The notes under the pieces: generated by a model
What the model saw: the letters and a program-made list of their open reading frames with translations, nothing else
Told to the model about the DNA's origin: nothing
Database searches by the model: none
Made by a program: the position numbers and the translations under genes
From: Rebecca billardiae RCC1528
Lineage: Eukaryota > Protista > Haptophyta
Reading direction: 5' to 3'
Assembly: GCA_965240325.2 (NCBI GenBank)
Contig: OZ251232.1
Span: forward strand, 682,001-746,000
Length of the DNA stretch: 64,000 nt
Part shown: positions 17,484 to 42,307 of the stretch, in pieces
How positions within the stretch are numbered: the first letter of the stretch is position 1
Layout of the letters: each line of letters begins with the position of its first letter

Positions 17484-20400
17484 TCAGTCCGACTTGGCAT
17501 GGCTTGCTGCTGCCTGCGCGCCGCCGTCGCTGGTACGGTCTGCGGCGTAATCAGTGCCGCCCGTGGCATCTGCGTCAGCGTGGCGCCGGTGCACAGCGAC
17601 AGTGGCAGTGCTGCTGCCGTCGTCGCCGGCACGCGCCCGCCACTTGACGCGCGCGTCGCCAGAGTCGTCACCGGCCGTGCCGCCGCCCGCGGCGTCAGCC
17701 CCGGGGCGCGGCGGAGCGTCGAGGTCACACAGCCGCTCGGCGAGCGAGCCCGACCAGAGCATGTGCCCGGGCAGCACCTCGTGCTTGAGCACGAGCGTGA
17801 GCGGCGTGATGGCGCAGCCGGCCGAGACGACCGCGCCCGCCTGCGCGAGCGAGCGCGGGCCGACGCACACCGCGCCCTCGCCGATGCGCACGCGGCTGTG
17901 CCGCATCGCGCCGTGGTCCACCACGTGCGGGAAGATGAGGACACCGTCTGCCAGCACAGAGCGCGCGCCCAGCTCGATGCTCTCCTGCTCCACCGGCGGC
18001 GGCACGTCGACGTAGGCCGACGCGGGCTCGGCCACCGACGCGCCGAGCGCGCGCCAGAGCAGCGTCATGAGCTCGGTGCCTGCGCGCGCGCGCGGGCGCG
18101 CGGTGGCGTGAGGGTGCGCGAGCGTGCGCGCGCGCAGGCCACGGGCGGCCGCACGGGGCGGCGCGCGCCTCGCCGCGTGCGCGCGCGCACGGCGCAGGCG
18201 CCTCCCGCGCGCACACCTCCGATCAGGTCTGTGGGGATGTGCGCGTGCAGCAGGCCCAGGATGGACCACACCGCGCGGTGCGTGCCGTGCAGCGAGTGCT
18301 CGCCCTGCGTGCAGCGCAGCGGGCACGGCGTGGCGCGCGCGCGCGCGCGACGCAAGTCAGCCGGCCGCGCGCGAAACCTCGCCCGCGCCGCGCCCGCTGC
18401 GGCGGCGCGCAGGCGCGCGCGGCCGGAGCGCGCCGCGCTGGCCGGGGGGCCGCGCGCACCGTGAAGCGCACGCCGGTGAGCGCGCGCAGGCCGAGCACTG
18501 CCGCGAGCAGCGCGCCCACCGCGAGCGCATACGCGAGGGCGATGCCGAGCGTGAGCGGCACCATCGCCACCGCCGCCCCGTGCGCGCCGTGCCGCGCCAG
18601 CGCGGGGCCGAGCACGGCGGGTGCGCCCAGCACGGCAAGCAGCCCCGGCGTGAGCCAGGTGCCCAGTGTGAGCAGCTGCGCGCCGCCGCCGGCGCAGAGC
18701 GTGAGGAGGAGCACGCGCCACGAGCCGCCGCCGTCGGCGGGCGGCGCGGCCGCGAGGCCGGGCTCCGCAGCGCCCCGGCCGCGCGACAGCCGCTCCAGCG
18801 TCTCAAAGTGCGACTGGCGAGATGCGCGCGAGATGCGCGCGAGATGCGCGCGCGATGCGGCGGCGGGCGGGCGCCGGGGGGGGGGGCGTCGGCGCGTGAG
18901 AGCGGGCGGCGCGTGCGCACCCAGGCCGCGCGCGGCGGCGCCTCTCCCCCGCCGCTGCTGGCGCGGCGGCGGCGCGGCGCCGAGCCCAATCTCGGCGCCA
19001 TCTCGGCGCCATCTCGGCGCCATCTCGGCGCCATCTCGGCGCCATCTCGCTCGCGCGGCACCGGCCCGGGCGGTGCGGCGCACCTTGAGACCGGAGTCGA
19101 GCAGCCGCGCCGGACTGCCCACCCAGGTGGAGCGCGCGGCGAGCGCGCGGCGCGCGGACACGGCGGTGAGCGAGCCCACAGTGACGTCGACGTCGGTCGC
19201 GGTGCCGGCGAGCATGTGCGCGTGCTCGGCAAGGAGCGTGCGCGCGCCCACGCGCACGGGCGCGCGCAGCGTGAGCGCGCCGCCGCCCCCGTCCTCCGCG
19301 CGTCCGCCGGGCGCGTCCGCGTCCGCGCCGCGCGCCTCGGCCGCGTCCGCCGCGCGCGTCGGCAGGAGCACCGCCCCCCAGCCCAGCCAGGCGTCGTCGC
19401 TGATCTCGACGAGGTCGGCGTCGGCGCCGACGAGCGTGCTCGCGATGAAGGCGCGCGCGCCGACGCGCGCGCCGAGCGCGCGGCTTAGCGCGCGGCTGAG
19501 CGCGCCGCCTCCGCCCACGTACGCGGCCATGGGCGCCGAGGTGCACAGCGCGTCGACCGCCCACGCGCACACCGCCTCGCGCGCCGACGGCCGGCGCACG
19601 CCCGCCCGCGCCTGCGCGCACAGCAGCCGCTTCGCGCCGACGGCGAGCAGAACGTAGGCGGCCCTCGACAGCAGCTGCCCGCACACGAGCCGGAGCGCGG
19701 AGGGCGGCGCGCGCGCGAGCAGCAGCAGCGAGGGCGAGGCGGACGCGGCGTGCGCGAGCAGCAGCGCGAGGTGCGCGAGGGCGAGCAGCGCGCACGCCGG
19801 CGGCGCGGGCCGCACATGCGCGCGCGCGGCCGCCGAGCGGCGTGGCGCGTCGTCAGGCGCGTCGGCGTCTGCGCGGACGTTCGCGTCGGCGTCCGCGTCG
19901 GCGACGGCGCGCGCGGGCGCGCCCGCCACGTGCGCGCCCGGCGGCACCGCCGTGCCCGCGAGCGCGTGCGACAGCGGCGCGACGGACGCGCCGGCGCCGA
20001 CGCGCGCGCCCGCGCTGAGCACGCTGCCCGGCCCGACCGCGGCGCGCGCGCCGACCGCCACCGCGTCGAAGCGCACGAGCACGCCGCCCTGCGCCGCGAC
20101 GAACCGATGCGCGAGCACGCACACGTCCCGGCCGAGGCGCGCGCCTTCGCCCAGCTCGAGCAGCTCGGGGTCGTCGATCAGCGCGGTGTCCACGATGGCG
20201 CCCGCGCCGAGCCGCGCGCCGCACAGCCGCCAGAGCGCGGCGCACAGCGGCCCGCCGCGCACCACCGACGCCCAGTGCTTCAGCGGCAGCAGCAGCCGGC
20301 CGGCGAGCCACCACCGAGCGAACGGCCACGACCACAGCCGCAGTGCCGACCCCGGGCGCAGCGGAGGCCGCACCAGCCTGCGCGCGGCCGCGCACAGCAG

Positions 20401-23400
20401 CACGACGCACAGCGCGTTCGCGCCGTGCATCGGCGGCAGCAGGCACAGCGCCCACCACAGCGGCCGCGTGCGCGCCACGTGCACGCTCGCCGCGTACAAC
20501 GGGATCGCACCCGCCGCGTGCACACAGAAGGCACACAGCGCGCACGCAAGCTGCACCGCTCGGCGCGCGGCCGGCCGCATCGGCGGCGCGAGTGTGGCGA
20601 GCTCGGCCGGCGGCGGCGGCGCGAAGGCCGCGCGCCGCTCCGCCGCCGCGGCGGCGTCCGCCGCGCCCGCGCCGTCCGCGCCCACCGCCGCGCCCGCGCG
20701 CGCCGCGCCCGCCTCCGCCACGCGCTGCGCGACGCGCGCGGCCAGCTCGCGCACGGTGTCCGCCGCGGCAATCTCAGCCAGGCTGAGCGCGATGCCGTAG
20801 TGGCGGCGCAGCGTGCCGAGCAGCTGCATCCGGCGGAAGGAGTCGGCGCCCACCGCCTCGCTGAGCGAGTCGAGCGGCGAGAGGCGCGGGCCGCCGCCGC
20901 CGCCGCCGCGCACGCCTGCGCCGCCGCCGCCATCCGCACCGCGCTCGGTGCGCTGCGCGCCGGTCAGCGCGCGCTCTGCGGGCGGCAGCGCGGGCGGCGC
21001 GGGCTCGGCGGGCTCGGCGGGCTCGGCGGTCTGGATGTCGAGGTCGGCCGCGAGCAGCCGCAGGAGGTGCGCCTCGAGCTCGGACGCGGCGGGCGCGCCC
21101 TCGGGGCTGCCTGCGCCCGGCGCGCCCCCCGCCTCCGCCTCGTCGCCGCCTCCCAGCCCGCCCTCCGCCGCGGCCAGCGCCTCAGCACATTCGCCAAGGT
21201 CGGCGTCGGCGCGCGCCGTCGCGCGCGCCGCGTCGGCGCGCGCGCGCCGCCGTCCGCGCGCGTCCGCGCCGTGCGCGTCCGCGCCGTGCGGCGGCCCGTC
21301 CGGCGTGAGCAGGTGCAGGCTGCCGTCGGGCATCAGCTGCCCCACCCAGCCCGTGCGCACACACACGCCGTAGTCCGCGTCGTCGTCGCGCACGAGTGGG
21401 TTGGAGGTGAGGGCGGGAGCGCACGCGCTCGGCTCAGAGGCGCCGGGCGGCGCCGACGCGGGCGGCGGCGGCGGCGGCGAGGCGGCCGCCGCGCTGGGAT
21501 CGGCGGCGGCGCCGGCCGCGCCCGGCGCGTCGCGCTCGCGCGCGCCCTCGCCGCCCGCCGCCGCCCGCTGCTGCCCCCCCCCCACCCGCGCCCGCCGCCG
21601 CTCCCCCCACGCCCTGCGCAGCTGCACACTCGCGACGTGAACAAATCCGGCCGCGCCGCTCGGCACCGGCCTGCCAAACCCGTCGAGGACGTACACGCAC
21701 ACGCCGGGGAGCGCGCGGCCCGCGCAGCCGGCGGAGACGTGCGTGCGCTCCGCCTCGTCCGCCTCGGCGCCGAGGTCCGCCGCCGCGGCGAGCGAGGCGA
21801 GCGGCGCGCGCCACACGCCGACCAGGCTCGCGCCGCGCGCGCGCCAGCGCGCGCACGCGTGCGCCGGCGGCCGCCCTTCGACCCAGAGTCGCTCCACGGC
21901 GGGCAGCGCCTCGGGGGCGAGCGCGGCGGCGGCGCGCGCGCGCAGCGAGAGCCAGCGCGCGCCGTGCGCGCGCGCGTGCGCGCACAGCGCCTCGGCGCCG
22001 CACGCCGCGCGCGCCGCCTCCGACTCGTGCACGAGCGCGCTCGCGCCGCGCGCGAGCGCCGCGGCCGCCATCTCGATGAAGGGCAGCGAGGGCCAGGCGT
22101 GAGCGAGCAGGGCGCACGCGTACTCGGAGGCGTCGGCGGCGTCGGCGGCGGGCGCGCGCGCCGCGCCGCGCATCGGGAGCAGCTGCCGGCAGTTGCGCGC
22201 GGCGTTGCCCAGCGCGGCGTGCGTGACGCAGTGCCACGCGCCCCGCTGCCACAGCCGCAGCGCGGGCGCGCGCGGCGCGGGCGGCCGCACGCGCGCCGCC
22301 TCCGCTCCGAGCGGCGCGGCGGCCCCGCTGCCCTGCGCGCCCGCGAGCAGGCTGCCATCCGGCGAGAGCTCGAGCGTGCAGCCCGGGGGCGCGCCCCCTC
22401 CGCCGCCGTCGCCGTCGGCCGCGGCCGCAGCCGCCGTCTGGCGCACGCGCAACAGCGCAGCGCCGGGCGGCTGCGCGCGCGACAGCGCGTCCGCCCGCGG
22501 CTCGTCCTCGCCCCGCGGCCCCGCCGCGCCCTCGGCGCGCGGCTCGCTCGCGCGCGGTGGCCCGCCGCCCAGCTGCACGACGCAGCCCGCGCGCAGCACG
22601 CCGAGCAGGCCGACCAGCCCGGCGCCGGCCGAGCGCGCTTCGAGCGCCACGACCGGCGGGGTGGCGGCGCCGTCGGCCGCGTCGCCGCCGTCGGCCGCGA
22701 CGCCGCCGCCGCCGGCGGGCTCGGCCCCAGAGCCCACGGGCGGCGCCGTGCCGCTCGGCGCGCGCGAGCCGAGCGCGGCGCGCACCGCGGCGGCGAGCGC
22801 GTTCGCGCGCGCGTCGAGCTGCGCGTAGCTCAGCGCGAGCGCGGCACCGCCCGGCCCGGCTCCGTGCGCGCGCGCGAGCACGATCACAGCGCTGCGCTCG
22901 CCCGCGGCGCGCGCCTCCGCCGCGTCGGGCGCGTCGGGCGCGTCGACGCACGCGGCGCGCGCCCATGGCAGCGCGCCGACCGCGCACGCCTCGGGCGCCA
23001 CCGGCCTGTGCGCGGCCGCGGCCGCCGCCATCGCCTCGGCGGGCTGCAGCAGCGGCTGGCGCAGCAGCGGGCGCGACGGCCGCTCCGCCACCGCTCGCAG
23101 CAGCGTGACGTAATGGCCCGCCATGCGCCGCATCACGCGCGCGTCGTACAGCTCCTGGTGGAACTCGAGCGAGCCCGAGGCGCGGCCGTCGGCGTGCATC
23201 TTGAGCTCGAGCTTGAGCTCCAGGTCGAAGCCGTTGCGCACGCTCGGCGCCTCCACGGGCTGCGCGGCCAGCCCGGGCGCCGTTTCGTACCGCCACTGCT
23301 CCACGTTGAAGTAGATCACGCGGCCGCGCCGCGCGCTGCCGCGCCGCCAGCCGTCGAGCAGCCGTGCGAAGAAGGGGGACGAGTGCTCGAGCCCGAAGAG

Positions 23401-24232
23401 CACGGCGGCGTGCACGCGGCGCACGAGCTCCGCAAAGTCCGTGCGCGGGCCCACGGCGCCGTCGACGCACAGCAGGTTGGTGACGAACCCGACGACGGCC
23501 GCCTCCGCGTCGGTGCGCTCGTTGCACGCAATCAGGCACGCGGCCGGCGCGCCGCGCGGCGAGAGGTAGCGCGAGACGAGGCCGAGGAAGGCCGCGAGCA
23601 GCGTCGTGTTGAGCGTCGCGCCCGCCGCCGCGCCGAGCGCGCGCACGCGCGCGAGCAGCGCGCGGTCGATCTCGAGCGGCGCCTGCCCGATCAGCTTGCG
23701 CGCGGCCTCGGACGCGGCACGCTCCTCCGCGGACGCGCCCGCGGGCGGCGCTGGCTTCTCGAGGGCGAGCTTGAGCTCGGGCAGCGGCAGCCCAGCCTCG
23801 CCGTACCGGCGGCGCCACGCGTCCCACTGGCCCGGGAAGCCGGCGCGCATCTCCGCCGCCTGCCGCGCGATGTAGCTCGCGTAGTCCACGCGCTGGTGCT
23901 CGAGCGCCCCGAGCGCCGCCTCGAGCGCGGCGTCCGCCTCCGCGCCCGCGTCGCGCCCCGCCGCCGCCGCCGCCGCCGCCGCCGCCATCATCGCGCGGTA
24001 CAGCGCCCAGAGCTCGTCGAAGAGAATCGAGACCGAGCCTCCGTCGTCGATCAGGTGGTGCAGGTTGAGCAGCAGCACGTGGTGCTGCGCGCCGAGCACG
24101 AGCAGCCGCGCGCGGAAGAGCGGGCCCTCGAACGGGTCCATGGGCAGCGCCGCCTCCTGCGCGTACGCGCGCGCCTCCGCCGCCGAGCGCGGACCGTCCG
24201 CGGACGCGGCGCGCGCGCCGCCGTCGTCGCCC

Positions 24233-24264
<32 letters not shown>

Positions 24265-27200
24265 CTCCGCGCTGAGGTCGTCCACGCGCAGCCACGCCTC
24301 GCGCGGGTACTCGGCCGCGTGCGGCGCCCACTGGTGCCACGTGTGCTTGTCGAAGCGCGTGCGCAGCTGCGCGTGCCGCCCGACCAGCGCCTCCAGGCCG
24401 CGCAGCAGCAGCGGCGCGCGCAGCGGCCCGAGCAGGCGCGTCGGCACGAGGTAGCCGTATGTGAGCTCGCCCTCCTGCTCGAGCATCTCGCGCACCGTCT
24501 GCAGCAGGTAGTACTGCTGCACCGACGGCGGCATCAACGGCTGCGCGCACCAGCCGGACGCGGCCGCGGACCCGCCGCCGCCACCCGCGCCGCCGGGCGG
24601 CGGAGCGCTCGGGCCGTCCGCGCGCGCGAGCGCGCCGCCGCCGGCCGGCCCGGCGGCGCTCGCGGCGACGGCCATCTCCGGGAGCGGCGGCGGCCGGCCG
24701 TCCGCGCCCGCCGCGCCGCGCGCGCCGCCCCAGATCGCCGCCCTCGCGCGCGCGGCCGTCGGCAGGTAGGGCCTCGCGGCCGCGCTCGCGCTGTGAGCCG
24801 GGTCGCCGGGCGCGGAGCGGAAGCGCTGCAGCGGCGGCAGCGGCGCGGCGGCGGCGGCGGCGGCACGTCGGCCGAGCGCGGCCGCCGAGTCGGCCGCGCT
24901 CCCGCCCGCCGACGCCGCGCCCCCGCCGTTTTGCAGCGCGCCCGCCGCGCCGCCGCCGCCGCCGTCGGCGCCGCCCCAGCGCGCGCCCGCGCTGCTCGCG
25001 CCGCCGTCCGAGGCCGCGGCCGAGCTGGGCGCGCGGACGAGGGCGACGACGGCGGAGTCGAGGCTGCTCTCGCGCGCGGCGAGCGGCGGCGGCGTGGCGG
25101 TCGGCTGGGACGCCGCCGAGCCGCCGCCGCCCGCCGCCGCCGCCGCCTCCGCCGCCGCGCGCGCCGCCGCCGCCGCCTCCTCCGCCGCCTCCGCCTCGGC
25201 CGCGTGCGCGTGCACAAACGCCGCGAGCGCGGACACGGAGTTGAGCGAGCCGCGGAGGACTGCGCGCATGGTGAGCGCAGTGCCGCACCGGCTGTTGAGC
25301 GCGCGCACGAGGGAGACCACGCCGAGCGAGTCGATGCCGAGCTGCACGAGCGTGCGCTCGGCGGGCGCGCCGCCGCCGGCCGCGCCCGCGCCCGCCGCCG
25401 CGGGCGCGCCGGCCGCCGCCGCGGCGCGGTCGTCAGCGCCACCGGCCTCGGCCGCGGCCGCGGGGGCGGCCGCGCCGCCATCCAGCTCGGCGCCGAGGTC
25501 GACATCGACCGGCAGCACCTGCGCGACGAGCGCGCTCACGAGCGCGTGCGCGTCCGCGAGCGAGCGCACGCTCTGCGCCGGCGGCAGCTCCCGCGCGCGC
25601 TCGCCGCCGGCCGCGGCGCGCTCGCCGGCCGCCGCGAGCGTGCCGCCGCCGCCGCCGTCGCCCCCAGCGGCGCGCCGCCCGGAGGCGCCGCCGCCGCCGC
25701 CGCCGCCGCCATCCGGTGGGCCGACGGCTGGCCAGGGGAAGCGCTGGCGCCGCCACTTCACCGGCTCAGCGTCCGCGTCCGCCTCGCTCCCGCGCGCGAA
25801 CGCGGGCACCCACTCCGCCTCGTCGCCATCGTGCCCGCCGGCGGCGGCGCCGAGCGCTGCCGCGTGCGCGTGCGCGTGCGCGTGCGCGTGCGCGAGTGCC
25901 TCGCCGCCGTCAGACTCGTGCGCGCCGCCCTCCGACGCGGCGTCGGCGTGCTCGGCGTCGGGCGCGCCGCCGTCCGCGCCGCCAGGCCCGCCGTGCTCGG
26001 GCGCGCTCAGCACCAGGTGCACGTTCGTGCCGCCCAGCCCGAAGCTGCTCAGGCCGATGTGCAGGGCAGAGCGCTCGGCGGCCGCGGCGGCCGCGCGCGC
26101 GCGCGCGGCCGCCGACGCGCCGCGCACGCGCACGCCGCCCTCGTGCAGCGCGTCGACGGCGGCGCTAAAGGCCGCGTCGGCGGGCTCGGCCTTGTCGAGC
26201 AGCGGCACGAGCAGCGGGCACGCGCCGCGCTCGCCCTCGAAGATCCGCCTCGCCATGTTGCACAGCGTCGGGTGCGGTCCGAGCTCGACACACACGCTCG
26301 CCCCCGCGCGCAGCAGCTCGCGCGCCGCGCCCTCAAAGTGCACGGGCTCGATGACGTGGCGCACCCAGTGCGACGGCTCGTGCGCCGCGCCGCACGCCTC
26401 CCAGCCGTCCGCGCCGCGCACGCACGAGACGAGCCGCGGACCCGCGCCGCGCGCGCGCGCAAAGCCGGCCGCGGCGGCCGCCGCGGCCGCGGCCGCGGGC
26501 GCGCGCCACTCGACGCGCCGCGCCGCCTCGGCAAAGGGCGCGAGCACCGGCGCCATCAGCGGCGAGTGGAACGCGTGCGAGACGTTGAGGAGGCGGTGCT
26601 TGGCGCCGACGCGCTCGACGAGCGCGCCGACCGCGCGCTCCGCGCCCGACACCGTCACCGCGCGCGCGCCGTTCACCGCTGCGAGCGAGAGCGCCAGCGG
26701 CGGCGGCGCGGCGCCGCGCTCGGCGCGCGCGCCCTCCGCCGCCATCGCCTCGATCGCCGCGCGCACCTCGGCGGCGGGCGCGAAGATGGCCGCCATCGCG
26801 CCGCCGGCGGGCAGCGCGTCGATCAGCTTGCACCGCGTGAGCACGAGCCGCACCGCGTCCGCCACGCCCAGCACGCCCGCCACCACCGCCGCCACGTACT
26901 CGCCCAGCGAGTGGCCGCACACAAGGTCGGGCACGCACCCGCGCGCCGCCAGCGCGCGCGCGAGGGCGTACTCGAGGGCGAAGAGGGCGGGCTGCGTGTA
27001 CCGCGTGCTGTCGAGGAGCGGCGGCGGCGGCGCGTGCGCCGCGGCGGCGGCGGCGGGCGCGGCGGCGGGCGGCGCGCTCGGCCCGCGCCGCGCCGCCCGC
27101 GCGGCGTCGCCCTCGTCCGCCCTGGGCGGCCCCTGGGCGCCCGCCTCCTCCTCCTCCTCATAGCCCAGCAGCTGCGTGAGGCGCACACCCTCGCCCAGGG

Positions 27201-28767
27201 CGCGCATCGCCGCGTCGCACTCGGCGATCGCCGCGCGGAAGGCCGGGTCCGTCCGGTGCAGCGCGCGGCCCATGCCCACGTGCTGCGTGCCCTGCCCGGG
27301 GAAGAGCCACGCGACGAGCGGCCGAGCTGCGCCCGCGCCCGCGCGCGGCAGCCGCGTCACGCGCGTCGGGAACTCGACCAGAGGGGGCGGCGAGGCGGCG
27401 CCCGCGCCGCCGCCGCCGCCGGCGGCTCCGTCGGCGTGCGTTGGCGGCTCGTCGGCCGCCACCGCCTCGAGCACGGCGGGCGCGAGCTGCGCCAGCCCGA
27501 CGGTGGGGAGCACCGCGCGCGCGGCCAGCTGCGCGCACACCTTGAGCAGTGCGGCCACGCCCGCCGCCGCCTCCAGGTTACCCACCGCGCCCTTGGCGGA
27601 GGAGACGAGCAGCGGGCGCGCGCGGCCGGCGCAGCCAAAGACTGCGCCGAGCGCGCCCGCCTCCGCCGCGTCGCCGAGCGCCGTGCCCGTCGCGTTCGCC
27701 TCGACGGCGGCGATCTGTGCGGGCGAGAGCTCTGCCGCGCCGAGCGCGCGGCGCAGCAGCTCCTGCTGCGCCGTGCCCGACGGCGCAATCAGCGTCAGCC
27801 CGTGCCCGTTGTGCCCGACCGCGCGCGCGCGCAGCGTGGCGAGCGCTCGGCCGCCCGCGCCGCCCGCGCCGCCCGCGCCGCCCGCGCCGCGCCGCAGCAC
27901 GAACAGCCCACAGCCCTCGGCGCGCACGTACCCGTCCCCGCGCGCGTCAAAGGGCAGCGCGCGCTCGGCGCGCGAGAGCAGCCCGAGCCCGCACAGCTCG
28001 GTGTACCGGCGCGGGTGCAGCAGCAGGTTCACGCCGCCCGCGAGCGCGAGCGCGCACCCACCGCCGTGCGCGCCGCCGCCGTGCTCGAGCGCGGAGGCGG
28101 CCAGGTCGAGCGCCACCGCCGTCGAGGAACACGCCGTGTCGACCGCCAGCGACGGCCCGTCGAGGCCGAGCGCGTAGGAGATGCGGTTGGCGCCGATCGA
28201 GGGCGTCTGGCCGAGCAGCGAGTGCGCGCCCACCGCCGCCCCGCCGTCCCGGCACACCTCCGCCCAGTCCGAGTTGCACAGGCCCACGAGCACGGCCGCG
28301 CGCGCGCCGCGCAGCTCGGCGCGTGCGTAGCCCGCGCGCGCCAGCGCCTCGACTGCGCACTCGAGCAGCAGGCGGTGTGCCGGGTCGACCGCGCCCGCCT
28401 CGAGCGGCGAGAGGCCGAACGCGCCCGCGTCGAAGCACTCCGCCGTGTCCGCGTCGAGAAAGTGGCCGGCGCGCGCGTACGCGAGCCCGGCGCCGCCGCC
28501 GTCGGCGCCGCCGCCGTCCGCGGCCGCGCGCGCCGCCCACGCGTCCGCGTCCCAGCGCGAGGGCGGCGCGGGCCCGAGCCCGCTCGGCGCGTGCGCGCTG
28601 AACGCGCGCCACGCGCCCTTCAGGCTGCGCACGCCGCCCGGCAGCCGCACGGCGTACCCGACGATCTGAACGGCAGAGCCGCCGCCCGGCGCGCCCGCGC
28701 CTCCGCCCGCCGCGGCGCGGCGCGCGAGGCTGTGCGCCGGCTCGGTGGCGGGGAGTGGCGCGGGCGC

Positions 28768-28799
<32 letters not shown>

Positions 28800-30544
28800 G
28801 GCCGAGCCTCCGCTCGAGGAATGCGCACAGCGCCCGGGGCGTGGGGTGGTCGAAGATGGCTGCCGCGGGCACGCTCACGCCCAGCCTCGCGCGCAGCAGC
28901 GTGCGCAGCTCGATCAGAGCGAGCGAGTCGAGCCCGCCCTCGGCGAAGGTGGCGTCGGCGTCGAGCGGCGCACCGGTGAGCTCGGCAACCGCCGCGCGCA
29001 GGGACTCGGCCACGCCCCCCGCGGCGGCGGCGGCGGGCGGCTCGGCTCGGCTCGCGGCCTCGGCCGCGTCGGCCGCGCCGCCGCGCGCGCGCGCGCCCTC
29101 GCCGCCTCGTCCGTCCACCGCCGCGAAGCGCGCGAGCCTCGGCCGGCCGCGCGTGTACGCGGCCCAGTCGACGTGCGCGACCGCCACGCCGTGCAGCCCG
29201 TCGTCGAGCGCGGCGCCCAGAGCGCCGAGCATCAGCTCGGGCGCGACGGCGCCGAGGCCGCGCCGCGCCAGCGCAACATCCGCGCCGGTGCGCGCGCCCA
29301 TGCCGACGTGTGACACGGCGCCCAGCTGGAGCGAGCACGCCGGCAGGCCGGCGTCGGCGCGCGCGCCCGCGAGCGCGTCCAGCGCCGCGTTGGCTGCCGA
29401 GTAGTTGGCCTGGCCGGGCGCGCCGAGCGTCGAGGACACGGATGAGACCAGGACAAAGGCCGAGAGCTCGAGGCGGCAGCTCAGGCTGGCGGCGTGCCAC
29501 AGGTAGGCGCCGTGCGCCTTGGCGCCCCACACCGCCGACATCGACGCGCTGTCCTGCGCGCCCAGCGTGCCGTCCGCCAGCACGCCCGCCGCGTGCACGA
29601 TGCCCCGCACCGGCGGCGCGGCCGGCTTCGCGGCGCGCGCCGTCGCCAGCGCGGCGCGCACGTCGGCGGCGCGCGCGCAGTCGCAGCGGGCGTGCAGCAC
29701 GCGCGCGCCCGAGCGCGCCAGCCGCGCCCAGTCCGCCTCCGAGCCCGCAGGCACGCGCCCCGAGCGCGAGGCAAGCAGCACGCAGCGCACGCCCACGCTC
29801 TCGACCAGCCAGCACGCGATGCGCAGACCGAGGCCGCCCGTGCCGCCTGACACCACCCACGTGCCCGCGGCGCCGCTCTCGCGCCACGCGCGCGCGCCGA
29901 CGTGACCGCCGCCGTCCCCGCCGCTGGGCGCGGCGGCGGGCGCGCCGAGCGCGCGCGCCGGCCGGCACGGCACGAGCCGCGCGCACCACAGCTCACCCCC
30001 CCGCTCGGCCAACTCATGCTCGGCGAGCGCGCGCGTGGCCACACCCGCAGGCGTGCCCGCCGCGCCGCCCGGCGCCTCCGCGCGCGCCTCGAGCAGCGCG
30101 AGAGCGCGCAGCAGCGTGGCCGGCCGCACGGCGGCGGCGCGCGAATCGTCACCGTCACCGCCGTCGCCACCGCCGTCACCGCCGCCGCCGCCGCCGCCAC
30201 GGCCGCGGGGCGGCAGCTCGAGGTCGAGCGCGGCGGCGCGCAGCTCGGGCACCTCGGCGCGCGCCGAGCGGAGGAGGCCCCACGCGCCCCCGTGCAGCGC
30301 GCTCGAAGCGGAGCACGGCGCACGCGCGGCCGGCCCGGCGGGCGCGGCGGCGCGCACGCGCTGCGTGCCCGCGGTGAGGACGAGCAGCGGAGGCGGGCGC
30401 GGCGCGCCGCCGCCCTCGGCCGCGAGCGCGCCCTCCGCGAGCGCCTGCACGAGCCTCAGCAGCTCCTGCGCGCACAGCAGCGAGCACCGCGCGGCCGCCT
30501 CGTCCGCCTCCGCCTCGGCCTCCGCCTCCGCCTCGGCAGCGTCC

Positions 30545-30581
<37 letters not shown>

Positions 30582-33456
30582 GCCGCGCGGCCAGCGACGC
30601 CCCTCGCTCCGCGCGCGCCAGCTCGGCCGGGCGCGCATACACGACACCGTCCCAGGGAGCGGCGCTGTCCGAGCGCAGCAGCGCCTCGAGCGCGGCCGAG
30701 AGCGCCTCCGCCGGCGCGTCCGGGTCGGGCGGCGCGCGGCGCACGAGCTCGACGGCGCCCGCTCCGGCGCCGGCGCCCCACGCCGCGCCCTTGCCCTCGA
30801 CCCCGCCGCCCGCCACGACCGCATCAGACGCGGCAAGCAGCAGCAGCCTGCGCCGCGGCGGCCGCGCTGCTTGGGCGCCGTCGGCGCCGCCGTTGAGTGG
30901 CGCGGCGGGCGGCGGCGGCGGCGGCGGGTGCTCGCCCTGCGGCACGCGGCGCCACTCGACGTGCCACAGCGCGCCCTCCAGGGCGGGCTGCTGCGGCGGC
31001 TGCTGCTGCGGCGGCGGCGCGGCCGTGGCCGTGCCGGCGGCGCCGTCTGCCGCGGCGGCGGGCGCGGCGGCCATCGCGCCGTCGGGGGCCGCCGCCGCCG
31101 TGGACGGCGCCGCGCCGAGTGCCGCGTGCGCCGCGGCGCTCGTCGCGGCGGGCTCCGCACCCCGCGGCGGCGGCGGCGCGTCCTCGCGCGCGCCCTCGAC
31201 AAACTGCGCCCACGGGTACGGCTGCCGCTCGAGCGAGGGCGCCGGGCGCGCGTCGAGCGCGGCGGCGAACGCGCCACAGCCGAGCGCGGCCGCGCCGCCC
31301 GCGCGCGCGGCCGCCGCGCGCCCCTCGCCCTCCGCCGCGGCCGCGGCGGCATCGGCGGCGGCGGCGGGCGTCGTCGCGCTCGGCGGCGGCGGCGGCGGCG
31401 GGGCGCACGCGCGCAGGATCACGTGCGCATTCGTGCCGCCGAAGCCAAACGACGAGACGCCGCCGACGAGCGGCACGCCGGCGCGCGTCGGCGCGCCGTC
31501 CGCGCGCGGCGCCGGCAGCCGCACCGGCGCCTTGGGCAGGCACACGTCAAACCCATGCAGGTTGAGCCCGGGGTTGACGGTTTGCAGCCCGCCGAGCGGC
31601 GCGGCCACGCCCTCGCCGAGCGTGAGGATCAGCTTGAGCAGGCCCGCCGCGCCCGCCGCGCCCTCGAGGTGGCCGATCGCCGTCTTCGCCGAGCCGAGCA
31701 CGAGCGCGCCCGCGCCCGAGCGCGGCGGGCGCGCGCCGCCCGCGCCGCCGCCGGCCGGCTCGGCGGCGCCGCCGCCGCCGCCGCCGCCAAAGACCGCGCG
31801 CAGCGCCTCGAACTCGATGACGTCGCCGAGCCGCGTGCCGGAGCCGTGCGCCTCGACGTAGTCCACGCCCGCCGGCGCCAGCCGCGCGTCCTCCAGCGCC
31901 GCGCGGATCACCGCCTGCTGCGCCGGCCCGTTGGGCGCGGTGAGCGTGGCCGAGCGCCCGTCCTGGTTTGTCGCGCAGCCGGCGAGCTCGGCGAGCGCTC
32001 CGGTGGGCGCGGCGGGCTGGGTGCCGCCGGACTCGGGCGCGAGGACGAGCGCGCCCGCGCCCTCGCCGCGCACGTACCCGTCCGCGCCCGCGTCGAACGT
32101 CGCGTTCCGCCCCGCGCGCGAGAGCATGTGCGCCTTGGCGAAGGCCACGAACAGGTGCGGCGTGAGGCACACGTTCACGCCGCCCACGAGCGCCGCGCCG
32201 CACGCGGACGCGCGGAGCTGCGCGGCGGCGAGCTGCGCGGCGACGAGCGAGGAGGAGCACGCGGTGTCGACGGTCAGCGCCGGCCCGGTGAGGCCGAGCG
32301 CGTACGCCACGCGGTTCGAGATGAGCGACAGCGAGAAGCCCGAGTGGCCGGTGCCTGAGAAGGCGCCCGCGCCCATCCGCGCTGCGAGCAGCGGCCAGTC
32401 GTTGGAGCACGCGCCCGCAAACACGCCGACGGGCGCGCCGGACAGCTGCTCGCGCGAGTAGCCGGCGGAGAGCAGGGCCGCGTGGCTCACCTCGAGGAAG
32501 AGCCGCTGCTTCGGGTCCATGCACGCCGCCTCGCGCCGGCCGATCCCCCAGACCGCCCCGTCGAAGCACTCGGCACTCTCCAGGAACGCGCCGTGCCGCG
32601 CGTACGCCTTGCCCGGCGCTGCGTCGTCCGGGTCGTAGTGCGCGCCGTGCGCCCAGCGAGAGGCGGGCACCTCGGTGACCGCGCTGCCGCCGTCGAGGAG
32701 CAGCTGCCAGAACGCGCGCAGCGACGAGGCGGAGCCGGGCAGCAGCGCCGCCACGCCGAGCACACGCAGCGCGGCCGGCGCGGCCGGCGCGCCGCTGCCG
32801 CCCGCGCCGCCCGCGCCCACGAGCGCGCCGCCGAGCGGCGGCGCCGCGCCGAGCGTCGCGAGGTGCGCGGCGAGCGCGCGCGCCGTCGGGTAGTCGAACA
32901 CGGCCGAGCCGGGCAGCGACACGCCCAGCCGCTCGCTCAGCTGCCGCCCGAACTCGATCGAGCCGAACGAGTCGACGCCCGCGCCGACGAGCGACTCGTC
33001 TGGCCCGGGCGGCGCGGCCGCGCCCGTCACCGCCACAACCACCTCGCCGATGGCGCGCAGCAGCGCGGCGAGCGCGCCGCCGCCCGCCGACTCGGCCGCG
33101 GGCTCGGCCGCCGCGAGCCGCGCGGCCGGGCCCGCGCCCGCTCCGCCTCCGCCCGCGCCGCCCGCGCCCGCGAGCGCGCCGCCGAGCGGCGGCGCCGCGC
33201 CGAGCGTCGCGAGGTGCGCGGCGAGCGCGCGCGCCGTCGGGTAGTCGAACACGGCCGAGCCGGGCAGTGACACGCCCAGCCGCTCGCTCAGCTGCCGACC
33301 GAACTCGATCGAGCCGAACGAGTCGACGCCCGCGCCGACGAGCGACTCGTCTGGCCCGGGCGGCGCGGCCGCGCCCGTCACCGCCACCACCACCTCGCCG
33401 ATGGCGCGCAGCAGCGCGGCGTGCGCGCCGCCGCCCGCCGCCGCCGCCGCCGCGCC

Positions 33457-36400: not shown

Positions 36401-39400
36401 ACGCCGGGGAAAGGCCGCCCCACGCTCGCCGCGAACTCGAGCCGCCCCGCGCCGTCCCGCGCGCGCACGTCCGGCGCGCGCGGCATGGAAGTGCAGATCT
36501 TGCCGCAGCACTCGGTCATGCCGTAGGAGACGAAGAAGTGGCCGTCGGTCGGGCAGGGGGCGTGCTGCCCGGCGGGGGAGCGCGCGGCGCGTGCGGCGCG
36601 GCCGCGGCCGACGACGCCCGTCAGCGCCGCGCGCACGTGCGCGGGCGCGAGCCCCGAGCCGCCGCACGAGAGCAGCCGCAGCGAGGCGAACGAGGCGGCG
36701 GCCGCCTCGGGCCGTGCGAGCAGCATTGCAAGCATCGTGGAGGCGAGGTTGGTCACGCTGACGCCGTGCGCGTCGATGGCGGCCGCGGCGCGGCCCGCGT
36801 CCCAGCGCGCCTGCACGACGTGCACGCCGCACACCGCCGTCGCCGCGTACACCCCGAACGCGTCAACCAGGTGGAAGATCGGCGCGAAGTGCCCCCACAC
36901 GTCCGAGGCGCCGAAGCCAAACTCCGCGAGCGCCGCGTGCGCGTGGGCGAGCACGGCCGCGCCCGAGAGGCACACGCCCTTCGGGAAGCCCGTGGTGCCC
37001 GAGGTGTAGTAGAGCGCGCACGGGCGCGCGCGCGCGTCGCGCGGCGCCGCGCGCCAGCGCAGCGCCGCCGCGCCGCCGCGCGCGCCCTCCTCCAGCGCGC
37101 CCTCGAGCTCGAGCGCGCGGAACGGGCGGCGCGCGGCCGCGTCGGCCGCCGCCTCGGCCGCGGCCGACTCGCGCGCGCCGCCGTGGCTCGCGATCCACAC
37201 GACGACGCGCGGGCCGCGCCAGGGCGGCGGCCGCGCGGCCGCGCCCGCGCGCGCCGCCGCCTCCGCCAGCCCCGCCGCCTCCGCCGCGCCGCCGCCCTCC
37301 GCCGCGAGCACGTCCAGCGCAGCGCGCAGCAGCGGCGCGTGCTCTGTGTGCGCGAGCAGCAGTGCGGGCGCGCTGTCTGCGAGGATGAACGCCAGCTCGG
37401 CGGGGGCGAGGCGCGGGTTGAGGTTGAGCAAGGTGCAGCGCGCGAGCGAGGCGGCAAAGTGCGCCTCGAGCACCTCGAGGGAGTTGGCGCAGAGCACGCC
37501 CACGCGCGGCGGCTCGTCGGCGGCGGCGGCGGCGGCGGGGGCAGTGTCGGCGGCGGCGGCGGCATCGGCGCAGGGTGGCTCGGAGGCCGGGGCGGGCTCG
37601 GTGGGGGCAGGGAGCGGGGCGCACGGCGCGTCGGCGCGCGGCGCCAGTGGCGGCGGCGCGGAGCACAGCGCGCGCATCCCAAAGTCGACGCCTTCCGACG
37701 CGGCCGCACCCGCGGCCGCGGCCGCGCCCGCCCCACCCGCGCCCGCGCCACCCGCGCCCGCGCCGTGCGCGTGCGCGTGCGCGTGCGCGTGCGCGTGCGC
37801 GTGCGCGTGCGCGTGCGCGTGCGCGTGCGCGTGCGTGGCCAGGAATCCGCCGAGGCACGCGGCGCGCGCCCACAGCTGCGCGTAGCTGGCCTCGCGGCCG
37901 TCGTCGCACACCACGCCGAGCGCGTCGGGCGCGCGCGCCGCCGCGCGCCGCAGCAGCGCCCACGCCTCCGCCTCGAGCGTGTGCGCGCGCCGCGCCGAGC
38001 GCAGCGGCCGCAGCAGTGCGCACGGCGGCGGCGCGCTCGGCGCGGCGCGGCGCGGCGGGGCGTGCGGCGGCGGCGGCGGCGGCGGCGGCGGGCAGTGGAT
38101 GAGGAGAGCGGTGACGCGCGCGCGCTCGCCGTCGGCCGCGCCCCCCACCGCGCCCTCCACCGCGTCGCTCAACGCCGCCTCCGCCTCCGCAGCCGTCGCG
38201 CACAGCCGCAGCGCCACGCACCGCGCGAGCGCGCCGCGCCGCAGCCTGGCCGCGAGGGCGCGCACGCGTGTGGGCTGACTGATCAGCAGCAGCAGCACGA
38301 CGTGCGGCGGCGGCGGCGGGGCGTCGTCGTGCGTGCGGGGGCGCGACACGTCGGCCGCGCGGGCGGCAGGCGTCGCCAACTCGCCGCCGCCTTTCCCCCC
38401 ACCTGCACCGCCGCCTTCGCCGCCGCCGCCGCCTGCGCCGAGCCCGCCGCCGCCTGCGCCGAGCCCGCCGCCGCCTGCGCCGAGCCCGCCGCCGCCTGCG
38501 CCGAGCCCGCCGCCGCCTGCGCCGAGCCCGCCGCCGCCTGCGCCGAGCCCGCCGCCGGCCAGCAGAGCGAGCAGCTCCGCGCCGCCCGCCGCGAGCTCCG
38601 GCTCGGAGAGCAGCGCAAAGGCGGGCGCGCCGCGCCGCGAGAGCGCCGCGCCGAGGGCGAGCGCCAGCGGCTGCGTCGGCGCAGCCGAGCGCGGCGCGCG
38701 CTCGCAGCCGAGCACGCACACGCCCGCGCGCACGCGCGCCGCGGCCGCGACCGCGCGCGCCGCGCGGCTCTCGCCGACGACGAGGGCGCTGCTCGGCGCG
38801 CACGCGCGCTGCAGCGCCGCCGCCAGCTGCGCCGGGCGCACGCCGCGCGCCGCGCCGCCGGCGTCCGCGCCGGCGTCCGCCACCGCCGCCGAGCTCGGCT
38901 CCGCGCCGCCGCCGCCGCCGCCATCGCCGCCGCCCAGCTGCAGCGCGCGCCGCCACGCGCGCTGCCGCTCCGCGCCCGCGTCGGCCGCGCCCGCGGTGGC
39001 GCGCACCGCGCTAAGCAGCGCGCGGACAAAGGCGCCCTCGTCGGCGCAGACGGGCGTGCCGCCGAGGTTGGCGCACGGCACGCGCGAGTCCGCGTGCACG
39101 TGCACCAGCGCGTGCGGCGCGATCGCCGTGGGCAGCGCCGCGCGCGCGCCCACCGCGCGCCCGGCCGCGCACCCGATCACCAGAACCGCATCGCACGCGC
39201 CGCGCGCGCGGCAGAGCGTTGCGCGCTCGGCGCGCGGCGCCGAGCCGTCGGCGAGGTCGAGGGACGAGGCGGCGCTGAGCACGGGCAGCGGCGCGGGCGG
39301 CGCGCCCTCCGCGCCGCGCACGCCCTCGGCCGCGCACGCCCCGCCCGCCCCGCGCGCGCCACCGCCGACACCGCCCGGCGCGTCCTCGTCCAGCGCGCCG

Positions 39401-42018
39401 CGGCCGTCCGGCGCCGCAAGGAGCACGGCGCCGAGGGAGGCGCTGAGCGCGGCGAGCTCGTGCGCACACGCGCCGAGCGCGCCGCGGCCGAGGAGGAGGA
39501 GCGGCAGCCGCGAGTCGCACAGCGCCGCGCGCGCGCGCTCCACGTCGTCGGCGCGCGGCTGCGTGCGCGTGAGCGCGCGAGCGTCGCACACCGTGCGCGC
39601 CGTGCGCGCCGTGCGCGCCGCCAAGCGGCGCGCGCCGTCGGCCGCGGCCGGCGCGCCCGCGGACGCGGACGCGCTCGCGGCCGCCGCCGACGTGGCGCTC
39701 GACGCGGCGGCGGCGAGGGCCGCCGCGGGCGCGACGAGCAGCGCGGGCCTGCGCGCGCGCGCGGCCGCGCGCGCCGCCTCCTCCAGCCCCCGCGCGCACG
39801 CCTGCCCACCGCAGCACTCGTCGAGCTCGGCCGTGTACGCGCACACCGCCGCAAGCGCACTCAGGCGCTCGTCGCGCGCGCGGCGCGTGAGCGCGGCGGC
39901 CGCGGCCGCGGCGTGGGCGGTGGCGGCGGTGGCGGGTGCGGGCGAGGGTGCGGGCGAGGGTGCGGCGTCGGAGGGGGCGGGGGCGTGCGCGCCCGCCGCG
40001 CTCGGCGCCTCGCCGTGCGCGAGCACGAGCAGCAGAGGCACGCCCGCCGCGGCGGCATGCGCGAGCGCGCGCGCCGCCTCCGCCCACGCCGCTGAGCCGG
40101 CGCCGCCGAGCGCGCCCAGCTCTGCAGCGCAGGGCAGCACGGCGCACGCCGCGCGGCCCCACGGGGCGGCGGCCGCGGCGCCGACGGCGACGCGCGCGGC
40201 GCAGCCCGCGGGCGCGTGCACGCGCACCAGCGCCGCGGGCAGCCGCGCCGCCGGCGCGAGCGCGCCCAGCGGCGGCGGCGGCGGCGTCGACGCACCATCG
40301 GCCGCGCCGGCCGCGCGCGCGCCGGCCGGCAGCCACAGCGCGGCGCTCAGCGGCGCGGCGCGCAGCCCGGCGTGCAGTGCGCTCTCCGCCGCGCCCGGCG
40401 GCGGCTCGGGGCCCGCCGCCGAGGCAGCGGCGGCGGCGTCGCGGCCGCCGCCCTCCCGACAGCGCAGCAGCACGCACACGCCCGGCCGCCGCTGCCCCGC
40501 GCCGCCATTCGGCCGCGACGGCGCAAGCGCCGCGCGCGCGCCGTCCGCGCTCGCAAGCTCGAGGCCGGCGGCTGGGCACGCGGCCTCGAGCGCCGCCGCC
40601 GTCGCATCGCCGTCCGCGCCGGGCGGCAGCACGGCGCAGAGCAGCACGGGCGCACGCGCCGCCGCGAGCGCGCCATGCACATCCGGCCCGAGCTCGCACA
40701 GCCGCGCCGCGTCGCACACGGCGACAACGGGCGGCGGCGCGGCGCAGTGCGGCGGCGGCGCGGCGCAGTGCGGCGGCGGCGCGGCGCAGTGCGGCGGCGG
40801 CGCGGCGCAGTGCGGCGGCGGCGCGCGCGCGGCGCCGCCGTCCGCGCGAGCAGCCGAGCCGAGCGCGTGCGCGAGCGCGCGCGCGCACGCCGAGGGCGCC
40901 CGCGCCGGGCACAGCACGGCGGGCGCGCTCGCGGCGCGGCGGCCGGCGGCAGCGCCCGCTTCGCCCGGCTCGAGCGCGCCGTGCTCACCCGCCGCACCCT
41001 CGGGCTCGGCCGCCGCCGCCGCCAGCACCGCTTCGACCGCCGCATCGACAAACACGCGCGCGCCCTCGCCGCACGCGCGGCCGAGCGCGAGCCGCAGCGC
41101 GCGCGCCGAGGCGTCGTCGAGCGCGACGGGCGTGGGCTCGGCGTCCTCGCCAGCACGCCGCGCCGCCGCGCCCGCCGCGCCGCCCGGCGTCGGCGCCGCC
41201 AGCCCCGGCGCCGCCGGCGCCGCGCGCTCAGCAATCAGCACGTCCACAGCTCGGCGCGTGGCCGCCGCCAGCTCGGCCGGCAGCGCGGGCGTGTGCACGC
41301 GCGCCGCCGCGTGCGGCGCGGGGCTGCGATGGGGCGGGAGCGGCCCCACGCCTCCCTCCGGCACGCGCACGTACCCCGCCAGCACGTCCGACGGCACCTC
41401 GACCGCCACCGGCCCCGCCGGGTGCGCGCGCGCCAGCCGCGCCGCTCGCAGCAGCTCAGACGGGAGCGCGTCCGCGCGCGGCGGCGCGAGCCACTCCTTG
41501 AGCGTGGGCGCGAGCAGCGCGTGCGCCTCGAACTCGCCGGGCTGGTGGTACGGCGCGTCGGCCGTCGGGTCCGCCCAGCAGCCCTCGACGCCGTCGCGCT
41601 CGCCGTCGGGCGCCGCCGCCGATGCCGGCGCAGGCTGCTCCACCGGCGCGCCGGCATGGCCGAGCACGTCGATGCCCTCGACGAGGAGGAGGAGCGGCAC
41701 GTGCGCGTCGAACGCGCGCACGAGCGCGGGCGCCAGCTCGCCGAGCGCCGCGCCCGCGCGCACGCACGCGCACACGAGCCCTCGGTCGTCCGCAGGCCGC
41801 GCCGCGGCTGCCGCGCCGGCGAGCTCGCCAACACCGAGCTCGGTCGCGAGCGGGACGCACGTGGGCAGCGCGGCCTGCAGCGCGGCCCATGTGCGCGGGG
41901 AGTGGCGCGCAGGCACGCCGACGACGAGGTCCACCCCCGCCGCGCGCAGCGTCGCGGCGACGACCGCGTCGGCGCGGTGCTCCGCGCCCGGGCGCAAGGC
42001 GCTCACGGAGGGAGCCAT
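17484..42018 (-). CDS. Giant hybrid PKS-NRPS megasynthase (~7990 aa) with N-terminal ThDP-fold domains and a C-terminal Pls-like membrane domain; predicted introns 18814-19083, 18305-18459, 18080-18216
   Basis: Approximate positions: ThDP-fold x2 38090-41980; A (YYTSGTTGFPKG, YGMTE, FATGDLG, GSGKVRK) 35890-37980; KR (GATGGIG, YAAAN) 33740-35690; ACP x2 (GVDSF) 32820-33420; KS (DTACSSS, HGSGT, GHLEG) 31410-32775; KR (GGTGGLG, YSAAN) 29160-30970; ACP (GLDSL) 28810-29010; KS0 26005-28672 containing AT (FPGQG, GHSLG, HAFH) 26130-27310; ACP (GIDSL) 25210-25550; C (HHLIDDG) 23060-24530; degenerate A 21310-23000; carrier (GADSF) 20740-21070; TM plus hexapeptide-repeat terminal region 17700-20560. 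The spliced length of 23973 nt is a whole number of codons. Confidence 0.92.
18819..19049. repeat. Two oppositely oriented 11-bp tandem arrays inside a megasynthase intron
   Basis: (GAGATGCGCGC)x3+ at 18819-18858 and (ATCTCGGCGCC)x5+ at 18989-19049. Confidence 0.85.
32820..33420 (-). repeat. Near-identical tandem ACP duplication (offset 351 bp)
   Basis: The two ~250-bp ACP-coding copies encode an identical ACP core, with only about three synonymous differences visible. Confidence 0.9.
37763..37834. repeat. Coding (GCGTGC)n hexamer repeat giving a poly(His-Ala) insert in the A domain
   Basis: Seen directly. A shorter copy lies at ~25862-25892. Confidence 0.9.
38425..38557. repeat. Coding 21-bp tandem repeat (GGGLGAG x~6)
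   Basis: CCGCCGCCGCCTGCGCCGAGC is repeated. A second 21-bp array (PPPHCAA x4) lies at ~40730-40822. Confidence 0.85.
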
Positions 42019-42307
42019 TGCTGCGGACCGGCTCGGGCTGGCGCCCAAATAGAATGCCCAGGGTAAAATGATCGCGAGCTCATCATCAAAAAGGCGCGCG
42101 ACGCCGCTGCGGGGACCAACGCTTTGTCGCTTTCTGGAAGACCGGCGCAGGCCAGCTGCGCAGGCTGCCTGGTTCCTGTGCCTGAGCAGCGTCGTCACCA
42201 GCGTGGAGGCACCGGCGCGGCGCCAAGCACCTCCCTTGGCCAAGCTGAAAGCGCACCAACCCTGCCAGAGAAAGTTCAAAGTGGCTCTGTGCATCGGCAG
42301 ATCCAGC

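Follow-up and report, generated by a model that had tools for sequence, protein, structure and literature searches.

Analysis of a 64,000-nucleotide stretch of DNA from the haptophyte alga Rebecca billardiae RCC1528 (assembly GCA_965240325.2, contig OZ251232.1, positions 682,001 to 746,000; hereafter, the window) shows that a giant polyketide/peptide synthase carries a complete, malonyl-type acyltransferase (AT) within the last β-hairpin loop of its second ketosynthase (KS2), to which it is joined by ~9 linker residues at one end and by ~20 Ala-rich ones, predicted to be helical, at the other. The gene is a single minus-strand open reading frame (ORF) of 8114 codons at 18223-42567. (Positions are those of the window throughout, and all features lie on the minus strand unless stated otherwise.) Within this frame the KS2 core, the complete AT and the two terminal KS strands follow one another in this order. 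Known folds are arranged here in a topology that turned up nowhere else in the comparison. There is high confidence in this topology and moderate confidence in its function. Taken as a whole, the evidence makes it probable that KS2 and the AT form a nested didomain, written KS2[AT], in which KS2 is a non-elongating scaffold or transfer domain, that the AT serves the module of the first ketosynthase (KS1), and that the arrangement originated by insertion of an AT.

Polyketide synthases (PKSs) are usually assigned to one of two architectural classes: in cis-AT systems the AT comes after a finished KS, within a flanking subdomain, and in trans-AT systems it is a separate protein. The canonical AT is itself an insertion within the KS flanking subdomain, a region of ~100 residues that lies beyond the finished KS fold, and its termini are close together for this reason (10.1101/2023.02.11.528132). 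Modular PKSs of algae mostly lack ATs (PMC4661987). The R. billardiae gene lies in a GC-rich genome (80-85% G+C in the gene region, ~70% in the flanks), and Pfam matches are ordered along the chain as follows: weak matches to thiamine diphosphate (ThDP)-enzyme-like domains, AMP-binding, KR, acyl carrier protein (ACP), KS1, KR, ACP, KS2, AT, the KS-tail part of KAsynt_C_assoc, ACP, and a condensation domain. With the ACPs located by their serines, the assembly line can be written A-KR-ACP-KS1-KR-ACP-KS2[AT]-ACP-C, the ACPs on either side of KS2[AT] lying at ORF residues ~4522-4584 and ~5720-5790.

The KS2 core (27496..28674; ORF residues 4632-5024) takes in the N-terminal half of the thiolase fold and the greater part of its C-terminal one. 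It contains the DTACSS motif with the active-site Cys, Cys4813 (28123-28140, starting at ORF residue 4810), followed by EANATGT and GNLEAAAG, in which Asn 4958 (27694-27696) and Asn 4997 (27577-27579) occupy the positions of the first and second catalytic His. An Ala/Gly/Pro low-complexity insert (27385..27495; ORF residues 5025-5061) then leads from a KS helix to the first strand of the terminal KS hairpin, PLVEFPTRVTRLP (27346..27384; ORF residues 5062-5074), which was recognised by comparison with KS1 and matches DVCLPKAPVRLP of KS1 as well as the '...TExxPWP' strand of bacterial KSs. From the hairpin loop a short linker (27310..27345), consisting in the translation of RAGAGAARP and the beginning of the first AT strand, enters the AT (26128..27309; ORF residues 5087-5480). 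The AT reads WLFPGQGTQ, GHSLGE, SHAFHS, LGPHP and, at its end, …HEGGVRVRG; its motifs are GQGTQ (near 27300), YTQ, GHSLGE with the Ser nucleophile, Ser5220 of the ORF (GHSLG near 26916), an Arg, and the malonyl-type HAFH (near 26577), and it contains two low-complexity inserts. The Ala-rich return linker (26068..26127) runs from this end of the AT back to a distal KS segment, LHIGLSSFGLGGTNVHLVL (25999..26067; ORF residues 5501-5523), which carries the motif SSFGLGGTNVHLVL and supplies two terminal β-strands. An earlier sequence-only reading of the window had described this order of motifs, and it holds: all of them lie in one minus-strand frame, to within a few bases of where they had been placed.

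Beyond the distal strand, ~85 mostly low-complexity residues separate the KS from WRRQRFPWP (25729..25755), which appears in the translation to resemble the end of a post-AT or post-KS linker; QPYPW (31210-31221) is its counterpart after KS1. In canonical KS-AT didomains the post-AT linker runs back to the KS and has an aromatic-Pro/Arg-Trp motif at its end. Neither KS has a recognisable flanking subdomain, and in both cases the Pro-Trp motif stands 60-100 mostly low-complexity residues beyond the end of the domain. These motifs may be the remnant of a linker that packs back on the KS. The linker beyond the distal KS strand also contains a perfect (His-Ala)5 repeat (25861-25890, minus strand; ORF residues ~5560-5569), which is encoded by a GTGCGC hexanucleotide run.

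Pfam boundaries alone cannot decide whether KS2 is split, because Ketoacyl-synt_C (PF02801) stops short of the terminal strands, and a full-length match to it before the AT is uninformative about them. A custom KS hidden Markov model (HMM) of 438 positions was therefore built from 70 bacterial KS domains. KS2 is matched by PF00109 (E 5e-54), PF02801 (E 1.3e-25) and the custom KS HMM (295 bits). With KS1 the custom model gives one match (HMM 11-435), in keeping with the earlier observation that the KS1 tail comes directly after its own core. With KS2 it gives two matches that flank the AT: HMM 11-384 at ORF residues 4632-5024, and HMM 414-436 at 5501-5523. Between them, the match to Acyl_transf_1 (PF00698) at 5087-5480 spans profile positions 2-318/319 (E 2e-48), as is expected for a complete AT, and KAsynt_C_assoc (PF16197) is matched by its KS-tail part only, at 5499-5525, beyond the AT. 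An HMM of the tail alone finds exactly two sites across the 8114 residues, one for each KS (E 2.5e-08 for the distal segment of KS2). The matches of the two models thus indicate that KS2 is made of one core and one tail with the AT between them, and that neither piece is duplicated or missing.

Comparison with PDB chains leads to the same result. In phmmer alignments, query residues 456-855 align to the ATs of CurL and GfsA, and the matches to the KS tails are non-collinear with this: query 880-902 corresponds to CurL 444-467 and query 876-899 to GfsA 417-440, both of which precede the ATs of those proteins. The split KS HMM, the tail HMM and these alignments together bear out the claim that the C-terminal strand of KS2 occurs only beyond the AT. 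Counted from the second catalytic motif, the tail motif of KS2 comes 517 residues later, and HAFH precedes it by 179. From the same catalytic motif to the GQG motif of the AT the distance is 97 residues, versus a median of 189 for 495 bacterial KS-AT pairs. No flanking subdomain or KS-AT linker domain was recognised between KS2 and the AT, either by Pfam or in the translation, and only nine residues lead from the hairpin strand to the first AT strand.

The reading frame is continuous across this region. The G+C content of third codon positions (GC3) is 0.92-1.00 in all 60-codon windows from ORF residue 4500 to 5700, both junctions included, and because it stays at this level, an intron, a change of frame or foreign DNA at the junctions is unlikely. 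There are no Ns in the region, and no long exact repeats flank the AT; the repeats that are present are short, GCC-type low-complexity runs, none of which brackets it. An intron, a frameshift and a repeat-mediated artefact, considered as sources of the nested order, were rejected on the basis of the unbroken GC3 and this repeat check.

Insight into the fold comes from two AlphaFold2 runs on a 906-residue segment, each with a different alignment. Alignment A3 contains KS-only rows and KS1; it pairs the distal strand with KS tails and leaves the AT without alignment. Alignment A2 contains full bacterial KS-linker-AT rows; the distal segment has no aligned sequences in it, and MAFFT set the last strand of the bacterial proteins on a poly-Gly stretch (residues 419-434). 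(A single alignment that mixed KS-only and AT-only rows, A1, was dropped because MAFFT mixed the two groups.) The A3 model has a KS core with a predicted local distance difference test score (pLDDT) above 90, a block containing the first hairpin strand at 85, distal strands (residues 879-885 and 890-897) at 91-94, and a poor AT. In the A2 model both the KS and the AT are above 90 and residues 418-455 are disordered; the same two distal strands form again, at pLDDT 56-71. In both models the low-complexity insert that precedes the first hairpin strand is disordered (pLDDT below 50), and the return linker contains a predicted helix (residues 862-873/876).

When the A3 model is aligned with known structures, KS-AT didomain chains fit by their KS part, GfsA 24-453 corresponding to model residues 4-900 (Z 54, 1.7 Å, 404 residues), and the KS-only bacillaene chain 5e5n 3-428 corresponds to model residues 7-904. 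With the A2 model KS-only chains rank first, and full-length FabF (1kas) 2-412 corresponds to residues 6-899 (386 residues, 2.5 Å). KS-only chains and full-length FabF fit the models through residue ~900, with Z of 43-54 and a root-mean-square deviation (rmsd) of 1.6-2.6 Å. Didomain structures can be superposed on the KS and the AT of the A2 model at once only with an rmsd of 26 Å, and the predicted KS/AT arrangement is therefore non-canonical. The five-layer thiolase fold with its two terminal strands is complete in KS2 only if the post-AT segment is counted. As modelled, this shows that the distal strands belong to the KS and complete its thiolase fold, which had been named as the structural question in the sequence-only reading. 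In neither model is the KS fold complete before the AT; in A2, where 419-434 is disordered, the distal hairpin still joins the KS.

The rarity of the nested order was judged against baselines that are all bacterial, algal PKSs not being in the sample. The comparison set consists of 432 retrieved proteins, all of them bacterial PKSs, with ~998 KS second-His motifs and 596 AT HAFH-type motifs. In this set the median distance from the second-His motif to the KS tail is 70 residues (5-95%: 68-76), the tail always lying ahead of the AT, and the generalisation that the tail motif precedes the AT in cis-AT PKSs thus held across the ~998 KS motifs. (Seven apparent long distances to the KS tail were misses of the regular expression, each of these proteins having a normal tail.) An AT motif followed by a KS tail within 900 residues was found for none of the 596 AT motifs. 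The best 80 AT loci from metagenomes, which are bacterial-type and at most 40% identical, contain 79 HAFH-type motifs; none of these has a downstream tail, and 61 have a normal upstream one. Searches for relatives with the 906-residue segment, with a mid-size query and with a 491-residue query containing the AT and its junctions yielded only bacterial PKSs, at 45% identity or less, an exhaustive search of representative sequences brought up chiefly multi-module bacterial PKSs, and no account of such a topology was found in the full-text literature on interrupted, split, nested or embedded KSs.

The embedded AT shares all of the columns that are invariant among 70 bacterial ATs (G467, Q468, G469, Q471, Q568, H595, S596, R621 and H707-H710 in segment numbering), and by its motifs it is classed as a PKS-type AT with a malonyl signature. 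No further AT was found in the 8114-residue ORF or in the 64-kb window, making the embedded AT the only one. KS2 keeps Cys189 and Lys368 and has Asn at residues 334 and 373 (segment numbering), leaving the Cys-His-His triad incomplete. Bacterial KSs matched by motif have His at these positions in all cases (864 at the first position, 998 at the second), as do at least 90% of the rows in alignment A3. With Asn in place of both catalytic His residues, KS2 is expected to be incapable of decarboxylation and of condensation, and so of decarboxylative condensation. KS1 has the full Cys-His-His set and lacks an AT.

In a tree with 45 bacterial cis-AT KSs, KS1 and KS2 group together with a support of 98 (SH-aLRT). 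This grouping is weak evidence for kinship, since both branches are long and compositionally biased; that of KS2 is the longer of the two and the longest in the tree (2.28 versus 1.19 for KS1). A Gly/Ala-rich insert of ~30 residues (31693-31782, minus strand; ORF residues 3596-3625) is present in KS1 between EAHGSGT and GHLEGAAG, and it splits the Pfam Ketoacyl-synt_C match in two. The protein as a whole seems to tolerate low-complexity inserts in its surface loops.

How such an arrangement might work can be proposed as follows. KS2 would most likely be a dimeric scaffold and possibly a transfer station similar to the KS0 domains of trans-AT PKSs, its Cys taking the chain from the upstream ACP and passing it to the downstream one, which supplies the condensation domain. 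Because the embedded AT keeps all of the invariant catalytic residues and is the only AT in the window, it probably loads for the KS1 module: it would place malonyl onto the ACP between KS1 and KS2, which would allow the catalytically intact, AT-less KS1 to elongate. As for the origin, an AT-coding segment was probably inserted into an AT-less KS of the kind that is common in algal modular PKSs. The AT can be regarded as an insertable unit, since canonical ATs are themselves insertions and have termini that are close together. The sequence-only reading had proposed just such an insertion into a loop of an AT-less KS. The topological part of that proposal stands, on the sequence and on two models. 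The evolutionary event is plausible, because KS1 is AT-less, has no recognisable flanking subdomain, is followed by the same Pro-Trp motif and groups with KS2, though on long branches.

Several points weigh against this interpretation. The ACP that the AT serves and the transfer of the chain by KS2 are things we infer. In the tree KS2 has a long branch of odd composition, as a decaying domain might also have. The homology searches, which returned bacterial PKSs, brought up neither another organism nor a paralogue with the nested topology, and conservation under selection is thus not supported. With respect to structure, it is A3 that places the distal strand with confidence, and its alignment already paired this strand with KS tails; the independent A2 model gives it only moderate confidence, and the structural fits were judged by aligned ranges rather than by residue-level coordinates. 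In addition, the core-AT-tail order is that of the assembled sequence; a look-up of public sequencing runs for this stretch came back empty.

A decaying module could account for some of these features: a rearrangement would have scrambled a former KS-AT module, leaving KS2 as a dead relic, the nested order as a scar, and an AT that may or may not work. The loss of both catalytic His residues from KS2, its branch length relative to that of KS1, the presence of low-complexity inserts, and the failure of homology and metagenome searches to find conserved relatives are all consistent with this. It is nevertheless unlikely, because the frame is open and strongly codon-biased throughout, KS2 keeps its Cys and Lys in a core with pLDDT above 90 whose fold is completed by the distal strands, every invariant AT residue is retained, and the embedded AT is the sole AT for an otherwise intact KS1.

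The same topology might also have another history, in which a canonical KS-flanking subdomain-AT unit lost its subdomain and the terminal strand was relocated or replaced through duplication and deletion, a permutation-like route. Such a route would fit an AT whose nearest matches are the ATs of bacterial cis-AT PKSs (34-44% identity) and whose end keeps a GV-x-V motif like the one at the start of canonical post-AT linkers. However, two or more events, each precise and in frame, would be required, neither Pfam nor the translation shows a remnant of a flanking subdomain on either side of the AT, and KS1, the apparent sister, is AT-less, without a flanking subdomain that can be recognised, and followed by the same Pro-Trp motif. 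This history is accordingly regarded as rather improbable, and the simplest origin for KS2[AT] is an AT-less algal KS that gained an AT segment by insertion. It is very improbable that the AT-coding block was misplaced during assembly of a GC-rich, low-complexity region: the many short GCC-type repeats there and an order read from the assembled sequence would allow it, but the frame runs on through both junctions, where GC3 never falls below 0.92, the AT has no long exact flanking repeats, there is no N, the pieces make exactly one KS fold (one core and one tail), and the linkers are sensible in both models.

Nesting of one assembly-line domain in another has a precedent in the interrupted adenylation domains of nonribosomal peptide synthetases (NRPSs), in which a methyltransferase or other domain is embedded between the core motifs of an adenylation domain that stays active. 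As in KS2[AT], a domain is placed in a loop and the host fold closes around it; unlike KS2[AT], the folds and the enzyme class are other ones, and the host is catalytically active. A different likeness is to the KS0 domains of trans-AT PKSs at PKS-NRPS junctions, which are non-elongating, have no AT and have a flanking subdomain. Judged by motifs and domain order, KS2 is like a KS0 in that it keeps the Cys and loses the His of HGTGT, lies just before ACP-C, and has a neighbouring elongating KS without an AT of its own; it differs in the loss of both His residues and in the embedded AT.

With the canonical cis-AT KS-AT didomain (DEBS module 5, 2HG4; CurL, 4MZ0; GfsA, 7VEE), KS2[AT] shares the presence of both folds on one chain (36-40% identity to bacterial examples for the KS and 34-44% for the AT) and a malonyl-type AT with the full catalytic set. 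In contrast to that didomain, however, the tail of KS2 (FGxGGTNxH) lies beyond the AT and not before it, the AT stands one element earlier, inside the KS hairpin, the flanking subdomain is absent, and KS2 lacks both His residues. By analogy, then, KS2[AT] may be viewed as cis-AT-like in having its AT on the chain and as akin to a trans-AT KS0 junction in its logic. The AT-less (trans-AT-like) modular PKSs of algae resemble the R. billardiae protein in being eukaryotic, multimodular algal synthases whose elongating KSs have no integrated AT; in the survey of these enzymes, ATs are absent, free-standing or ordinary cis, and an AT inside a KS is not mentioned (PMC4661987). There is an even chance that KS2[AT] represents a separate KS[AT] architecture, the first of its kind, with a functional AT set, without a flanking subdomain, into the thiolase fold of a KS that does not elongate, and serving an AT-less neighbouring module in the same chain.

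If this is correct, nature has a third solution beside the cis-AT and trans-AT organisations of PKSs, and one that would be a natural model for domain grafts in KS loops. A KS would tolerate an insertion of 430 residues in its terminal hairpin loop, the flanking subdomain would not be required for holding an AT beside a KS, and one AT embedded in a dead KS might serve a neighbouring module. These points bear on the evolution of modules in eukaryotic algae and on engineering that needs permissive sites for AT swaps or additions, and structural studies of an algal megasynthase would gain a compact construct in KS2[AT].

Elsewhere in the gene, the weak ThDP-enzyme matches, to an N-terminal and a central domain (E 2e-07 and 2e-03, the second below the Pfam cut-off), fall at 38090-41980 (minus strand; ORF residues ~199-1068), before the loading adenylation domain. 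In the first ~180 codons of the ORF (42030-42567, minus strand) GC3 is 0.72-0.82, versus at least 0.92 in the PKS part, and given this drop the actual start codon, or else the boundary of a first exon, is probably downstream of the mechanical ORF start. Smaller dips in GC3 are also seen near 38517, 35457 and 18447-19167. Finally, an antisense open frame of 3187 codons (19750-29313, plus strand) overlaps the PKS gene. Since stop codons are rare at more than 80% G+C, this frame, like the numerous other long ORFs on either strand, most likely reflects base composition and is not a gene.

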